A DNA stretch of 64,000 nt, from contig CAJFCJ010000031.1 in NCBI GenBank assembly GCA_904063045.1, positions 186,001-250,000 of the forward strand, written 5' to 3'. Of the stretch, positions 1-64,000 are shown piece by piece; within the stretch, counting starts at the first letter, position 1; the number at the start of each line of letters is the position of its first letter. A program made the position numbers and the translations under genes. Source of the DNA: Dimorphilus gyrociliatus. Taxonomy: Eukaryota > Animalia > Annelida. The notes beneath the pieces were generated by a model that searched no databases, had not been told where the DNA came from, and was given only the letters and a program-made list of their open reading frames with translations.

Positions 1-3000
1 CGGATGAAGAGGATGAAGAAAACGTCATTAAAAAACTTGCTAAGCAGGTAACCTTGAAACAGTGTAATGAAGTCTTTATTAACTGATTTTGTCTGATTAT
101 GAGTGTTATCTTTTTTTCCTTCTTCTCCGTAATTGCTTTTTATCAAAATTGTCTTTGTTTACAATTTTGATATATTTTTAAATATTTAACAGAATATAGG
201 TGATATTTCTCCTCCTGCTTTACCATCTCAACCTCCTCCGATACCGCCCTCATCTCCTCCACCATTGGACGATAATCGTCCACCTTCCCTGTCTAAGGGA
301 TTTTCACCGATGAATATCCCATCTGTTGATGAGGAAGAGGAACCGTCACCATATCGTAGTGGACCACCACCATTGGCCGATGAAGAAGTATTCTCAGAGG
401 AGGAGGAACACAAGTTTGAAATAAAAGAATATCAGAAAAGTGAACAGAAATTTATTCCGGAAGATGTTGAAACTATGTCAAGAGTTATACACGATTTAGA
501 GGAAAAAGATGTTGAAAAAGAGGAAATAATTGATGCATCGACGGTTGCCACAATTGATGATTCTGAAACACCTTCCATACGCGTTCAAGGATTGTCAGAT
601 AACCAGAATGCTCAAGATGACGACAGACAGCACGATTTTGATGATGAAGATATAGTGGAAGATAATGACAGTTCGGCAGTTAAAACCGATGATGACGAAA
701 GTGACGCTAATGCAGAGGATAACAAGGTTTAACCCAATTATCCCTTGATTAAGCTTTATCCTGTTTTTTTTAGCTTGAATAATTAGATGACCTCGTTATA
801 TTTTCTTTTTATAATTAGCATCTTTATACACCAATATTTTTTATTTATTCTCTCTTCTCTTTCTTCCTCATTAAAGTTAAGAGATACGGTTGTAAATGGT
901 AAACAAGGAGACAAAGTTCATGAAAATGGGCTAAAACTAGAGAAAGAACAGGAAAGAAAACAAGAAATTAACGAAGATATAGAAAAAGAAGAACTAACAA
1001 AAGAAAGAGAAGATTGCAAACTAAACAAAGAAGAAGAGAGCGAACAATTAGCAATTGATGAAACACAACAAAACGAAATGTCCAATCTATTGGATAAACC
1101 GGATTGTAAAGGAGAAAATGTTGTTCCCATGGAAACCAGTTTAAGTGAAGATAAGTGTTCAGAGTTATCAAATGTAAGGAATTTGCAACGATCATATAAC
1201 AATCAATCGTTAATACCGAAATAAATTCTTTTCTCACTCACTTTTCTCTTTATCAGAGCGACGTCAGCCAAGAAAAGAATGATCACGAACTAACCAGTAG
1301 TCGTGATGATGATTCTCACAACGGTAGCCTTGAAACTTCGTCTTGCCTCAATTCTACTGTGGAGGTTTGTTATCCTTTCTTTATCTATCTATCTATCTAT
1401 ATATCTATCTATTTATATATAGTATATCTTTATTTCTGTCTTTTTTTAAAACTGCCAAAACTCTCTTTATCTTTATACAAATCGAAGCAGCAATGATGTT
1501 CCGGTAGGGCGGTGTGCCTTATCTTTTCTATAGAACTAGAATCATTACTAATAATACTAGGTGTGAATGATATAATGCAGTAAGAATTTCATTTATTCCT
1601 ACTAAAAATAAATTAAAAAAATACGCTTTTCCTTCCTTTTTTTGCTGTGAATTTGAAGTATCATTCTCCTCTTGTATAATAATTCTTTCCTTTTTCAGTC
1701 TTCCAAGCAAGGAGACTCTTCCATTGATGATATAAAAGTCAGTATTTTGTTTCTTCTCTTAGCAAGATATTAAAGCTTTTTTTTCTTTTGCTTAAGATTA
1801 CTTCCCCATTATTGAATTTAACGGCTGAAAAGGCCAGAGCTTCATTGAGGTTACCTGGAAGGAAAAAACCTACCCGTGCCTCTGTTGCAACGGGTACCGT
1901 TTTTAGCACTGTTGATATAAATTTAAATGATAAGCTTCCCAAAACCGAAAACGATATCAAAGCTAATGGCCATGATAGTGAACCCGTTAAGAAACAGAAG
2001 CCTAAACTGCCACCAGGAGCCGTTCCAATACCGTACATACCCCCAAAACCCAAAGATGATACCCCGCCGAAGTTGAAAGCAACGAAATTTGGAGTACCAA
2101 TCATGCCCATGTCTATGTCGGCTACTATTGCATCAGCTGTAAAAGAGAAGGTAACAAAAGCCGAAGCAGTCGAGGAGCAGGAGACAAGTAAGAACAATGA
2201 AGATAAACAAACCTTCATAAAAACAGACGACATCGAAAAAATAATCAAGAAAAATAACACAAACGACAATCATTCTGGATCCCCATTACCTTCTTCAGTA
2301 AGCTTATAACAAGTTTTTTGAGAGCCCTTAATAGTTGACTCTATCAAATTTTTTTTAGAAACCAGTCCCAGCACCTCGTCGACCGAAGCCCGTTTTAAGG
2401 AATGTTTCTCAAGAGGAGGCAAATTCTAGCGTTCCAGCTTGGCAATCTTCTTTGAGGCCGCGTCCTGTTGTTGCACCTAAACCTGTGTCTAGAAAAGATG
2501 AACAACCAGCTTGGATGCAAAAGGCTAAAGAGGTGGCTGATCGAAAATCTGCGATTATTACGGACACAACTGATACAAGTGCCAATGGAAGTAACCAACC
2601 CGTTTTCAAATCGGAAGTAAAGGAAAATACAACAGAGAAACCCCAATGGTTAAAGGAATTAGCTAAAAGGCGCGTCAGTAAGCCACAAATTATGGAAAAA
2701 TCAAAGACTGAAGGTAATCTAGACTTGAATAGATTTGCATCTTATAAATTGATAATTTAAAAAATTTTCTCTTATGTAGACCAAGAGGACGAACTGCAAA
2801 AAGAATTTAAAATGAGAAGACAGAGGGTTAAGGAGAAAAGTAAGTATATGGGAGTCTAGTAACCATTTAAAATTAATTATCCGAGTTCAGAATATACAAC
2901 CAAAGCGTTTTCTTTTTATCTAAAAATATTTTAGTGAATATTAATGTAAAACTTACGTTCAGTTAGAAAATATAGTGCCACTAAAAGGCCATCAATAGAT

Positions 3001-59539: not shown

Positions 59540-61060
59540 ATGTCTAATGAACAAGAAATCCCCGACCGAATGTATGGTTTGGTGAAAACAAAAGATGAAA
59601 TAGGTTATGATTTTGATGAAAATATGATTGTCCCACATCCCATTGAAGATGAAGTGTTAATTAAGGTATCATACTTGCCTTCATAATATGTTAAATTAAA
59701 TTTGTTTTCATTACGATCACGCAATTTGTTTGCTTCTCTAAAAATAAATATAAGTACAGGTAGAGTCTGTGTCCTTGTGCGGTAGTGATCTAGTTCTATG
59801 GAATTGGACCGATGCTGCTAAGGTTATTGCATCAATTCCATTTACCCCAGGCCACGAATGTTGCGGAACAGTTGTCAAATGCGGACCCGAATCAAAGCTT
59901 CAGGTAGGAAGAATAATAAAACTTCTCCACCCTAATTAATAATTTTAACGAATCATCATTTCGCTCTTATACCTTTTGAGTAAATCTTCCACAGATCGGT
60001 GATCGAGTTGCGGTGGAGAATCATTTTTTTTGCGGTAAATGCCATCAGTGTAAGCATGATAGAGGAGATATTTGCAGTGATATGGGACAGTACGGCCATG
60101 GAAAAAAAACTCCGTACGGCGGCTGCTCGCAATATTCAATCGTATCCTCCAAGTATTGCTATAAATTAGGCAACATAATAAGTTGGTAGAGCATTGAAAT
60201 ATTTCAAACACATCAAATATTATCCACTAAAAATAGATGCTGATGAAGCTGCTTTATTAGAGCCTTTGGGTGTTGCTCACAATGCCGTTGAGAATTTAGG
60301 TGACTTGAATAGGGAAGATGTCCTGATTATTGGTGCTGGTCCTATTGGGCTTATGGCAATTCCCTGCGTTAAAAGTTGCGGGGCAAACAGGTGTAAATAC
60401 AATTTATATACAGGTATATATTGTATTTGTTTAATAATACATAAATATTTTTGTTAAAAAGAGTCATCATATGCGATATAAACGAGAAAAGACTACAGTT
60501 TGCCAAGGAGATGGGCGCCGATCACGTGATTAATACTAATCATCAAAATCTTTCAGAGGTAAGATGGATACTACGAAAAACATTTATACTTGACATGCAA
60601 AATACTGATAAATGCCTAAGATCTGTCCTATTTATTCAGTCTATATCTCAACTGACAAACGGAGATGGAATTGGCCGATTGATAGAATGTAGCGGAGCAG
60701 TGCAAATAGCTTCTATTATGTTTCAGCTAGTGAGAAAGGGAGGCCACATTGTACTAGTAGGTCTCGTCAAGCAGCCGTTAATTATCGAAAATTATATGCG
60801 TGATTTAGGTTCGTATATTGTATCATATCACTAAAAACTAATAGTTATTATATCTTTAATTAGTTTTTAAGTCAATTCAAATTCGTGGCATTCACGGAAG
60901 AAGAATATTTCATACTTGGCGCGAAACTGAGAAACTAGTGGAATCGAAACGCGTTGACATATCGAAGCTAATTTCTCATAAATTCCAATTTAAAGATTAT
61001 AAGAAAGCGTTCGAAATCCTACTAAGTGGAGAAGCTCATAAAATTATCCTTACCCCGTAA
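59540..61060 (+). CDS. tdh: Zinc-dependent (MDR family) L-threonine 3-dehydrogenase-like, E. coli Tdh type; about 7 exons
   Basis: LCGSDLVLWNW, GHECCG, structural Zn loop CGKCHQC...DIC, LLEPLGVAHNAV, GAGPIG, VFKSIQIRGIHGRRIFHTW (cf. E. coli Tdh IFKGLFIKGIYGREMFETW). Confidence 0.8.
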
Positions 61061-61161: not shown

Positions 61162-62346
61162 TTAATTGGGGTCTTGTTCTTGTTTTAATATTGCATCGAT
61201 AAAAGTGCTCTTTTCATCCATCAAGAAACCTCTATCCAAGTCCCCTTGTTGATTTTCTCTTTGTTTCCTCTGTCGCTGTTGCCTCATACGTTGGGCCCTC
61301 TCCGCTGAATAGCCGTGATTTATTTCGTTTAAATCTCTTTGCTGATAAAAAGTAAGACTCAATCTCTTCGGTAATAAGCTGTTAGGTTTTGTGAGAGCAG
61401 TTGTAGCATGAGTTTCATATTTAGAATATTCAATTAGAACAGATCCGTTTGTTAGCTCTAATCCTAAACCTCCTACCGAACCCCCTGGAGTTGTACTGTA
61501 ATGGGACAGTATGTGCAACTGCTCTGGCTTACGTTTCAATGGCACTAACGTATAGATAACCGAACAACCTTCATCCATATTCCAAAAATCCTGATGAGTA
61601 TGGGCAGAATAATCCATATTAATGTTTACAGTTGAATAAGGTCTTTCAGATCCAAAGCCAATTCGACAATTATTATTCAGTTTAACCATATTTGCGAAGC
61701 ATTTGGGAACAAGATCTTTTTGAATCTCAGCGACATCTTTTGCACATTCATTAATAAGTTGGGCAACTTCTCTAGGTAAATTACCATATTTTTTCATATC
61801 CCTATTTTGGGCTTGAGCAAACCCACAACCTTCTAGATATGGTGAATAAGAGCAGCCTACGGTATAGCTTCTACCTTTAAATTTTTCAAACACTCCTTGG
61901 CAAGAGCAGGTTCTTGAACGATTCCAAGTACAAGCTCTAGGCCTTTCAAGCTTACTATTGCACATATTGGCACATAACATACCAAAGAGTAATTTTTGGT
62001 CGTAATAGGAAAACTCGTTTTCCCATTGAACAATTGCAATTATAAATAGGGAGTATTTACAAGTATGATATGGCCTTTTTCGATATAGTATAAGTAATTG
62101 TTCATGATCACTCTCATTTTCGTTTTTAGAAAGAACTTCAAGAGCTTTGGGACAACCTTTTCCGTCAACTCCAACATACTTTTTATAGTAAACTGGAATT
62201 AGCCTTGCTTTTCTTTCCTCAAATATTTCACTTAGATCTTCTTCATTTTTTCCGTGGCCCAAATGAAAATATATATTACCTTCCAACAATTCAGTATTAA
62301 TATTACAATCGCAGGGAGGTATACTAGCGTTTCGGATGAAGGACAT
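61162..62346 (-). CDS. TET: TET-family 2-oxoglutarate/Fe(II) dioxygenase, catalytic domain only, intronless, 394 aa
   Basis: Cys-rich region (PPCDC, YFHLG.G, KGCP, YHTC, TCSCQG, GCSYSPYLEGC), HxD motif SAHTHQDFWNM, EQLHIL, and GSVLIEYSKYETHATT...KRLSLTFYQQ..LNEINHG, all colinear with the TET2 catalytic domain. Confidence 0.9.
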   Translation of the reverse strand: MSFIRNASIPPCDCNINTELLEGNIYFHLGHGKNEEDLSEIFEERKARLIPVYYKKYVGVDGKGCPKALEVLSKNENESDHEQLLILYRKRPYHTCKYSLFIIAIVQWENEFSYYDQKLLFGMLCANMCNSKLERPRACTWNRSRTCSCQGVFEKFKGRSYTVGCSYSPYLEGCGFAQAQNRDMKKYGNLPREVAQLINECAKDVAEIQKDLVPKCFANMVKLNNNCRIGFGSERPYSTVNINMDYSAHTHQDFWNMDEGCSVIYTLVPLKRKPEQLHILSHYSTTPGGSVGGLGLELTNGSVLIEYSKYETHATTALTKPNSLLPKRLSLTFYQQRDLNEINHGYSAERAQRMRQQRQRKQRENQQGDLDRGFLMDEKSTFIDAILKQEQDPN

Positions 62347-62722
62347 GGCTAATTTGCCGAGTGGAATAACAAGAAATTAAAAGAACTCATTTAATTAATA
62401 CTAATTTTGTTAAGCATAACTCAGGAAAAAACTTTTATACTACTATTTAAAGGTAAAAATTTCATATTGTAGATGGCGCTATAAGTAGGTTGAAAATATT
62501 TTATCGTTAAAATAGTAATTTTAAATAAATTTTATCAGAAATAAAGTTTTAAAATCTAATGGAAAAAATATATTTTTTATATTTTTGGTATAAAAATTCA
62601 AAATACGAAAATAATATTTAAAGAAAAAAAAAGCAGTCAACTGACATCGCAATATCATATCCAATAAAGGCGATTGTTTTTTTCATTGGTGACAATCTTC
62701 CTGGTTTTTATATACATTGAAT

Positions 62723-63478
62723 ATGATTAAATTATTCTCATTACGAAATCAAGAGAAAGAAGGCAATGATAGTAAATCCGGGAGAGTTAATCAGAAGAAA
62801 GTATCAGCAGCCGTTCTAAGAGTCCAGAAGGGTATGAAATTTCAAGTCATATTAAATACTTTTATCAAACTCTTTTAATGTATAAATTGTAGATTTAAAC
62901 GATCTAAATCTTCCTAAAACGTGTAAAGTTGATTTTCCGGACCCAGACGATCTCCTAAACTTTAAATTGACATTAATACCCGACGAAGGCTTCTATCGTG
63001 GAGGAAAGTTTGTATTCTCTTTCAAAATTCCACCAGGATATCCTCATGAAGCACCCAAAGTAAAATGTGAAACCATGGTATACCATCCAAACATTGATTT
63101 GCAAGGCAATATATGCTTAAATATTCTCAGGTATTTCATGATATATAGTTATGACCTTCTACTCTTGTACTAAAACAATTAATCTAATTTATTCAGGGAG
63201 GATTGGAAGCCTGTTCTTAACCTTCACTCTGTTATTGTTGGGATACAGTTCTTATTTCTGGTATAGTATTACTCAAATAAAATATTGCACACATTTAGTC
63301 ATTATTAATACTTGATTATTCATCATTTAAATAGGAACCTAACCCTCATGACCCCTTAAACGAAAATGCTGCCGAAATGCTAAAAACAAACCAGCGGATG
63401 TTTGAACAGAACATCTTCAAGTCAATGAGAGGTGGTTATATCGGAAGTACATACTTCGAACGCTGTCTCCTTAAATAG
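62723..63478 (+). CDS. UBE2M: NEDD8-conjugating enzyme Ubc12
   Basis: MIKLFSL N-terminus, [67 protein letters not shown]. Four exons. Confidence 0.96.
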
Positions 63479-63493
63479 AGAAATCGCCACCTT

Positions 63494-63495
<2 letters not shown>

Positions 63496-63537
<42 letters not shown>
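63496..63537. repeat. (AT)n microsatellite just after the UBE2M stop
   Basis: About 21 AT units, directly visible. Confidence 0.9.
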
Positions 63538-63542
<5 letters not shown>

Positions 63543-63830
63543 AAGGAGAAATGGTCGAGTGCCATTTAACATTTGGCTATTTTCGTATAATCTAAATGGT
63601 TTTACAATTTATAGTTCAAATCATGCAGATAGGCGTTTCAGTTGTGCGATTTTCTAATACAAAAATTTATTATATTGCGTATGCTAAAACTATTTTTAAT
63701 ATTATTAATTAATGTGAAATGAAATGCAGCGTGTTTGAATATGTCATTCTGTGTATTGGTTTTTTTTTTTGTTTCTCTTTTTTTTATAATAAGAAAGTTA
63801 TAAAGTTCAAAATATCCATTTTTATTCTAT

Positions 63831-64000
63831 CTATTCTTCTGGGACATTTGAGTTTGTGGGAACGATGGCTCCGCCTCCGATTAATCCATTTGCAGTATTG
63901 AAAAGATTAATTGGACTATTTCCATCAGTGATTAAAGTTGATTTGATGCCAAGACCTTGCAATAACTTAGCTTGCATCTCTGGTCCAGCGACGGCGATTG
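63831..64000 (-). CDS. 3' terminal exon of an unidentified gene continuing beyond the window
   Basis: Open frame ..[55 protein letters not shown] ending in TAG at 63831-63833. GC is higher than the flank. Confidence 0.5.

Follow-up and report, generated by a model that had tools for sequence, protein, structure and literature searches.

TET dioxygenases are usually viewed as large proteins that carry a long disordered insert and are tied to the erasure of 5-methylcytosine (5mC), and the JBPs oxidise thymine. In human TET2, the N3 of 5mC is hydrogen-bonded by H1904 and N4 by N1387, while Y1902 stacks on the base (PMC11804724). The annelid Dimorphilus gyrociliatus has been reported to possess no DNMT3, to show 0.16% methylation of CpG sites (below the non-conversion rate), and to carry a duplicated TET gene (PMC11292947). 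In a 64-kb window of the genome of this animal, i.e., the whole stretch of DNA analysed here, a minus-strand open reading frame (ORF) of 394 codons encodes a miniature TET protein, which we designate as mini-TET. We propose, with a probability of roughly 0.55, that mini-TET is a selected, single-exon, and very divergent TET paralogue that is probably an active dioxygenase with a shifted substrate. Coordinates are positions in the window, and substitutions written as residue pairs follow human TET2 numbering unless stated otherwise.

The protein is confined to the TET catalytic core. The Pfam Tet_JBP profile (PF12851) matched residues 167-336 of mini-TET with 72.3 bits against a cut-off of 34.9, and the human TET2 catalytic constructs matched at an E-value of 5e-53, with one block over residues 7-291 and another over 290-362, which together cover the Cys-rich region and the double-stranded β-helix (DSBH). 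In mini-TET, Y283 and G292 are separated by eight residues (284-291), where TET2 has approximately 438 residues and the canonical TET encoded on contig C19 of the same genome (hereafter C19 TET) approximately 180. There is neither a CXXC domain nor a long N-terminal region, and the start codon stands just ahead of the first zinc-binding Cys pair, as it does in several natural insert-less TETs described below. A preliminary description of the locus, made from the sequence alone, had proposed both the restriction to a Cys-rich and DSBH core and the replacement of the insert by about eight residues, and our searches agree with it on both points.

The fold was modelled with AlphaFold2 (AF2) from a 51-row alignment, which gave a predicted local distance difference test (pLDDT) score of 86.5 and a predicted template modelling (pTM) score of 0.86; the single sequence gave a pLDDT of 32. 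When the model was used as a Foldseek query, the best matches were human TET2 chains, with E-values of 1e-34 to 1e-35 and template modelling (TM) scores of 0.75-0.78, and the next best were OsALKBH1, CcTet, and NgTet1 at 1e-8 to 1e-6. The TET2 fold is predicted for mini-TET with confidence. Because the model superposes on TET2 far better than on other dioxygenases, the ligand assignment described below is not an alignment artefact, and misassignment of the metal ligands, for which a structural check had been proposed, is not indicated.

The positions that bind metal and cofactor are conserved without exception. Our core alignment comprised 101 rows, in which 105 columns showed at least 95% invariance across 96 canonical TETs; mini-TET retains 68 of these columns. 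Among them are all 13 of the Cys/His columns that are invariant in the canonical TETs: C12, C14, C65, H94, and C96 of mini-TET correspond to C1133, C1135, C1193, H1219, and C1221 of TET2; C139, C147, C149, C165, and C174 to C1263, C1271, C1273, C1289, and C1298; and C227, H249, and H344 to C1358, H1380, and H1912. The Fe triad of H251, D253, and H313 (the last within an ETH motif) matches TET2 H1382, D1384, and H1881 in a gap-free alignment, and the H251-Q252-D253 stretch is encoded at 61588-61596. The contacts to 2-oxoglutarate (2OG), R328 and S330 in a KRLS motif (likewise aligned free of gaps) together with H278 and R137, correspond to R1896, S1898, H1416, and R1261, respectively. N256 and Y334, the equivalents of N1387 and Y1902, are kept as well. 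Thus, the metal, 2OG, and candidate zinc positions are retained in 20 of 20 cases, compared with 48 of the 85 other near-invariant columns (Fisher p 6e-5), which argues that selection for a folded, metal-binding enzyme acted along most of the long branch leading to mini-TET. By conservation, mini-TET appears to keep its structural zinc ligands, and the same criterion underlies their allocation to the three zinc sites. Signs of past purifying selection are supported by the alignment, and the earlier proposal that the gene is still under selection fits both the intact frame and the bias of retention towards ligand positions. The accompanying statement that the zinc-site, Fe, and 2OG residues appear intact is valid for the Fe triad, the 2OG contacts, and the Cys/His positions (zinc by conservation); several near-invariant residues that contact the base or the DNA are not intact.

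The DNA-contact loop carries W1291Y, M1293P, N1296E, K1299G (G175 in mini-TET), R1302Q, and S1303A (A179), and T1372N (N241), H1868N, and T1393S are found elsewhere. In the 5mC-reading triad N1387/Y1902/H1904, two of the three residues are kept (N256 and Y334), and H1904 is replaced by Q336. Gln at this position is unique among the 112 aligned TETs, the insert-less ones all having His. In human TET2, H1904Q increases the oxidation of thymine to 5-hydroxymethyluracil (5hmU) fivefold, and 5mC oxidation is reduced 10-40-fold in most N1387/H1904 variants (PMC11804724). The double mutant K1299E/S1303N exhibits strongly reduced activity (PMC6244454), and without the T1372-Y1902 scaffold oxidation does not proceed past 5-hydroxymethylcytosine (5hmC) (PMC6244454, PMC12830177). 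Since the base-reading and DNA-gripping residues of mini-TET have been rewritten, its preferred substrate or product likely differs from the canonical conversion of 5mC to 5-carboxylcytosine (5caC) on CpG DNA. By analogy with the human mutants, mini-TET probably no longer acts on 5mC in DNA as ordinary TETs do and is not expected to perform well as a 5mC oxidase. It had been suggested that the protein could be a useful compact enzyme; its use as a 5mC oxidase is doubtful with K1299, S1303, T1372, and H1904 all replaced.

mini-TET encodes a complete TET-type catalytic core with intact Fe(II), 2OG, and candidate zinc sites; in the mechanism that we propose, it would still work as an Fe(II)- and 2OG-dependent oxidase, with a flipped-out 5-methylpyrimidine as its target base. 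The substitutions H1904Q, T1372N, K1299G, S1303A, R1302Q, W1291Y, and M1293P may shift its preference. Candidate activities would be the conversion of thymine to 5hmU in DNA, the oxidation of 5-methylcytosine in RNA (m5C), and a weak oxidation that comes to a halt at 5hmC. A change of substrate would be in keeping with the negligible genomic 5mC and the lack of DNMT3 reported for this animal.

To place mini-TET in its genomic setting, we scanned the genome (77,897,245 bases in 349 contigs) with the PF12851 profile and found three TET-family loci: mini-TET, C19 TET, and a very divergent third copy on contig C234. C19 TET has a low-complexity N-terminal region of approximately 950 aa, the insert of approximately 180 aa mentioned above, and no CXXC domain. 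It retains K1299, T1372, and H1904 and is placed among invertebrate TETs on a terminal branch of approximately 0.5. Its identity to mini-TET is 31% in the N-terminal block and 42% in the C-terminal block, and mini-TET is no closer to it than to spider, fish, or human TETs. The C234 copy was compared with mini-TET exon by exon; its DSBH part is 28% identical to that of mini-TET, and its Pfam score of 32.9 bits lies just below the cut-off. The coexistence of C19 TET, with its insert, speaks against the earlier idea that mini-TET represents an extreme streamlining of the TET of this animal. A search for an intron-containing paralogue, which had been recommended, did return the canonical paralogue, but as a single open frame.

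A scan of the whole genome for C5-methyltransferase domains yielded two loci only, one with a single 393-aa frame and one in two pieces, which we read, from the frame layout alone, as DNMT2-like and DNMT1-like, respectively, and hence no DNMT3. This result and the observed/expected (o/e) CpG ratio of 1.01 in the window agree with the published negligible 5mC and lack of DNMT3 (PMC11292947). C19 TET is well conserved despite the negligible 5mC reported for D. gyrociliatus. Its conservation suggests that this animal still makes use of TET chemistry.

mini-TET is not the only natural TET without an insert. A HMMER search returned 802 relatives, the closest non-self match being 34-40% identical to mini-TET, and the distance between the DSBH halves was measured in the best 150 of them on a scale from which the few junction residues of the mini form are excluded. 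The distances in these 150 were bimodal, with 3 for mini-TET, 1-9 for an insert-less set, and at least 96 for natural canonical TETs; the engineered TET2 crystal construct has 85 on this scale. The insert-less set (P0104, P0110, P0112, P0114, P0118/P0159, P0120, P0133, P0137/P0189, P0141, and P0146) comes entirely from metagenome, ENA, Logan, or JGI contigs, mostly as single ORFs, and a metagenome scan added the insert-less loci L020, L026, L029/L030, and L084. Natural insert-less TETs with a Cys-rich domain form at least 10 clusters at 50% identity, the set coming from environmental eukaryotic DNA throughout, and the earlier premise that TETs lacking the insert are known chiefly as engineered constructs or non-animal proteins is not supported. 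Some members are fused to further domains: P0146 (L007:3478-5037; L008:974-2533) is a THAP and TET fusion of 519 aa, and P0112 combines TET, MBD, and PHD in 996 aa. In P0189 (464 aa), Pfam detected Tet_JBP and a weak, sub-threshold SET match only, and a C2H2-like finger is apparent by eye at the C-terminus. The gap of approximately 89 bp in L084 is read as an intron positioned exactly at the canonical insert site, which hints at a relation between the insert site and gene structure.

Other searches around this class were less productive. Named short hits from Lottia and Laodelphax were considered as insert-less TETs and rejected, as they look like gene-model artefacts. Pfam scans of the ORFs flanking the environmental mini-TETs gave no clue to a host or mobile-element context, a scan of viral contigs found no relative, and none of the 80 loci from the metagenome scan exceeded approximately 31% identity over the N-terminal part. 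Word-index protein searches, whose blanks are uninformative owing to length and word limits, gave back the query and one alignment member only, both for the single protein and for an 11-row alignment of insert-less TETs, and a protein atlas contributed nothing further. Dozens of host-associated JGI metagenome contigs (L031-L083) carried C-terminal exons of canonical TETs, 40-60% identical to mini-TET residues 291-347. These contigs look like DNA of animal hosts within microbial metagenomes; from the style of their accessions, they may stem from gutless-worm and termite projects.

The trees placed the insert-less proteins on long branches, all outside the compact group formed by the canonical TETs; in the first tree (117 rows), Hydra was located just outside the bilaterian TETs. 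mini-TET grouped with P0146/P0133 with support values of 89/90, and after removal of these two proteins it wandered among the remaining long branches. The approximately unbiased (AU) test rejected neither a clade of mini-TET and C19 TET (p 0.316) nor the grouping of all nine insert-less proteins in a single clade (p 0.073). The phylogeny that had been proposed as a check therefore provided a grouping with insert-less proteins but left the sister relation to C19 TET standing, and the trees do not fix the origin of mini-TET because its branch is too long. Apart from the trees, mini-TET has 7-16 identical derived residues in common with each insert-less TET and one with C19 TET, and it carries three (M220, I229, and L294) of the five residues at class-diagnostic columns (M220, I229, V243, N255, and L294 in mini-TET numbering). 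We therefore lean towards membership of mini-TET in the insert-less class.

Several points weigh against a selected and active enzyme with a shifted substrate. No orthologue of mini-TET was found in the HMMER, metagenome, or exact-match searches; its terminal branch is the longest of the family, at approximately 4.7 changes per column; and the retention of only 68 of the 105 near-invariant columns is also compatible with relaxed constraint after the loss of DNA methylation. Regarding the substrate, N1387 is unchanged in mini-TET, and in human TET2 this residue outweighs H1904 in its effect on thymine oxidation, and the fivefold increase seen with H1904Q is relative to a very low starting level (PMC11804724). 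The effects of T1372N and K1299G in the mini-TET background are extrapolated from human TET2 mutants.

Some of these observations are shared by the main rival explanation, in which mini-TET is a decaying relic, i.e., a spare paralogue under relaxed selection after the loss of DNMT3 and 5mC, inactive or nearly so, with a frame that is open by chance. The replacement of 37 of the 105 near-invariant canonical positions, including K1299, S1303, T1372, and H1904, would be expected of such a gene, as would the longest branch in the tree and the failure of our searches, among them a look-up of the exact protein sequence on other contigs, to find an orthologue or a transcript. However, neutral drift at approximately 4.7 changes per column would not leave 394 codons open; at the base composition of the locus (33% GC), the probability of such a frame by chance is approximately 2e-14. 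Nor would drift spare every metal, 2OG, and zinc position and at the same time alter 44% of the remaining conserved columns. In addition, the gene occupies a tight slot and has a putative promoter region in common with a housekeeping gene, and the good conservation of C19 TET shows a genome in which TET chemistry is still used. A relic is therefore unlikely, although we regard it as the alternative to be taken most seriously.

Two more specific views of the activity are each rather improbable. One is that mini-TET is a natural, germline neomorphic TET: in an animal that has abandoned genomic 5mC, the combination of H1904Q and the remodelled DNA loop would have retuned it to oxidise thymine to 5hmU in DNA, as an animal equivalent of the thymine-hydroxylating JBPs of trypanosomes, or to oxidise another 5-methylpyrimidine such as m5C in RNA. 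The other is that mini-TET is an ordinary compact 5mC-DNA oxidase that performs the canonical conversion of 5mC to 5hmC, 5-formylcytosine (5fC), and 5caC, for example on transient embryonic methylation, and tolerates its substitutions. The kept Fe, 2OG, and zinc ligands, N1387, Y1902, and R1261, as well as the predicted TET2 fold, are compatible with this canonical role, and early-stage 5mC is not excluded by the methylome paper (PMC11292947). Nevertheless, in human TET2 the exchange H1904Q, replacement of both K1299 and S1303, and disruption of the T1372 scaffold each weaken the enzyme or divert its activity (PMC11804724, PMC6244454, PMC12830177), the 5mC level in the adult is 0.16% (PMC11292947) with a CpG o/e of approximately 1, and C19 TET is already available for the role.

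A recent processed retrocopy of C19 TET that has lost the insert, as the preliminary description had envisaged, is highly improbable. mini-TET is intronless, and the AU test permits the sister relation with C19 TET; however, intronlessness is uninformative on retroposition because the would-be parent is itself one open frame of 1578 aa. The identity of 31-42% to C19 TET is not above that to human or spider TETs, and neither a poly(A) tract nor an AATAAA signal was found downstream of the mini-TET stop codon. The derived residues common with the insert-less TETs, in contrast to the single one common with C19 TET, and the presence of M220, I229, and L294 also point away from such an origin. That the ORF is the last exon of a larger gene with missed upstream coding exons is hardly credible. 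A 3' splice site is formally possible, given a T-rich run that ends in an AG 3 nt ahead of the ATG (ttag followed by cc ATG). However, an in-frame TAA stands 11 codons upstream, an adjacent upstream exon has no room because a divergent gene starts 376 bp away, minus-strand ORFs of at least 60 aa are absent from 62347-64000, homology to TET2 begins at mini-TET residue 7, the point at which other insert-less TETs start as well, and D. gyrociliatus is without trans-splicing (PMC7854359).

The features of the locus and of the related TET genes are collected in the table. The single ORF is present as originally described, on the minus strand with an ATG start, and the remaining five frames of the stretch carry 20-42 stops each. 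The lack of a long N-terminus, which had also been noted, is in line with the upstream stop codon and the nearby divergent gene. The neighbours, a UBE2M/Ubc12-like gene and an alcohol dehydrogenase (ADH)-like gene, contain introns, as the earlier description of intron-rich neighbours had it, because each is split into several ORF pieces. The intergenic stretch is likely a bidirectional promoter used by both mini-TET and the UBE2M-like gene. On the other side, mini-TET and the ADH-like gene are convergent, and with approximately 101 bp from the end of the latter to the stop codon of the former, their 3' ends must nearly abut.

Table. Positions of mini-TET, its parts and neighbours in the window, and of related TET loci elsewhere (residues in mini-TET numbering)
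Feature	Position	Strand	Remarks
mini-TET, complete coding sequence	61162..62346	-	394 codons; ATG start; TAA stop at 61162-61164
Cys-rich region (~residues 9-190)	61777..62322	-	from TET2 alignment
Altered DNA-contact loop (residues 165-179)	61810..61854	-	Cys ligands kept, contact residues replaced
DSBH, first half (~residues 191-283)	61498..61776	-	C227, N241 (61624-61626), H249, H251, D253 (61588-61596), N256, H278
Eight-residue junction (284-291) replacing the low-complexity insert	61474..61497	-	from TET2 alignment
DSBH, second half (residues 292-345)	61312..61473	-	H313, R328, S330, Y334, Q336 (CAA, 61339-61341), H344
C-terminal basic helical tail (residues 346-394)	61165..61311	-	predicted helix over 348-390
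AT-rich intergenic stretch, 376 bp	62347..62722	.	head-to-head with UBE2M/Ubc12-like gene; putative bidirectional promoter
UBE2M/Ubc12-like gene (NEDD8-conjugating enzyme)	62723-63173	+	divergent; ATG at 62723; 376 bp between both start codons
Zinc-type alcohol/sorbitol dehydrogenase-like gene (ADH_zinc_N)	60194-61060	+	short introns; convergent; ends ~101 bp from mini-TET stop
Canonical TET (C19 TET)	G000:C19:3168774-3173510 (L006:2275-7011)	-	one uninterrupted 1578-aa open frame
Third TET, very divergent mini copy	G000:C234:20238-21318 (L003:840-1920)	+	two overlapping ORFs
Insert-less TET of L084, GC-rich, multi-exon	778-2403	+	~89-bp gap between matched blocks

The TET duplication of D. 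gyrociliatus is already published (PMC11292947). In a narrow literature search, we found no prior description of the miniature architecture, of the wider insert-less class, or of a natural H1904Q pocket. TET cores that lack the insert and have a Cys-rich domain arose either many times or once long ago, and they may guide the design of minimal enzymes. With a genome essentially free of 5mC, D. gyrociliatus retains both a canonical TET and an intact, heavily remodelled mini-TET, and the most unusual residue of the latter is the very exchange by which human TET2 is moved towards thymine oxidation experimentally. The role of TETs in methylation-free animals thus becomes directly testable with a small, easily expressed protein.

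Among the known systems, the catalytic domain of human TET2, as crystallised with the insert replaced by a linker (4NM6, 5D9Y, 7NE3, and 9HXV), has the same Cys-rich and DSBH architecture as mini-TET, and the predicted fold is common to both (TM 0.75-0.78). mini-TET, with 394 aa, is similar in size to the engineered insert-deleted construct of approximately 460 aa; its insert is absent naturally rather than by engineering, its identity to TET2 is approximately 30-37%, and it differs by H1904Q, T1372N, K1299G, S1303A, R1302Q, W1291Y, M1293P, and H1868N and by the lack of a long N-terminal region. C19 TET belongs to the same family and, like mini-TET, is one open frame with no CXXC domain. Unlike mini-TET, it has an insert of approximately 180 aa, an N-terminal region of approximately 950 aa, and a short branch, and the two are 31-42% identical.

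The environmental insert-less TETs resemble mini-TET in architecture, with a Cys-rich region and DSBH, 1-9 residues at the insert site (3 in mini-TET), M220, I229, and L294 in common, and a similar junction motif, H-x-L-x-x-Y ... G-G-L-G. They are, however, only 28-36% identical to it, all keep H1904 and nearly all K1299, and some add THAP, MBD, PHD, or C2H2 modules. The neomorphic leukaemia variants of human TET2 at H1904 (H1904Q) and N1387 include the same Gln as mini-TET at the His that reads the N3 of 5mC (PMC11804724), but they are somatic or engineered single changes in a canonical enzyme, whereas the change in mini-TET is germline and one of many. NgTet1 of Naegleria, CcTet of Coprinopsis, and trypanosome JBP1/2 are compact, insert-less 2OG- and Fe(II)-dependent dioxygenases that act on 5-methylpyrimidines. 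The animal Cys-rich module is absent from them, and the structural match of these non-animal TET/JBP proteins to mini-TET (E 1e-8 to 1e-6, TM 0.36-0.46) is far weaker than that of TET2.

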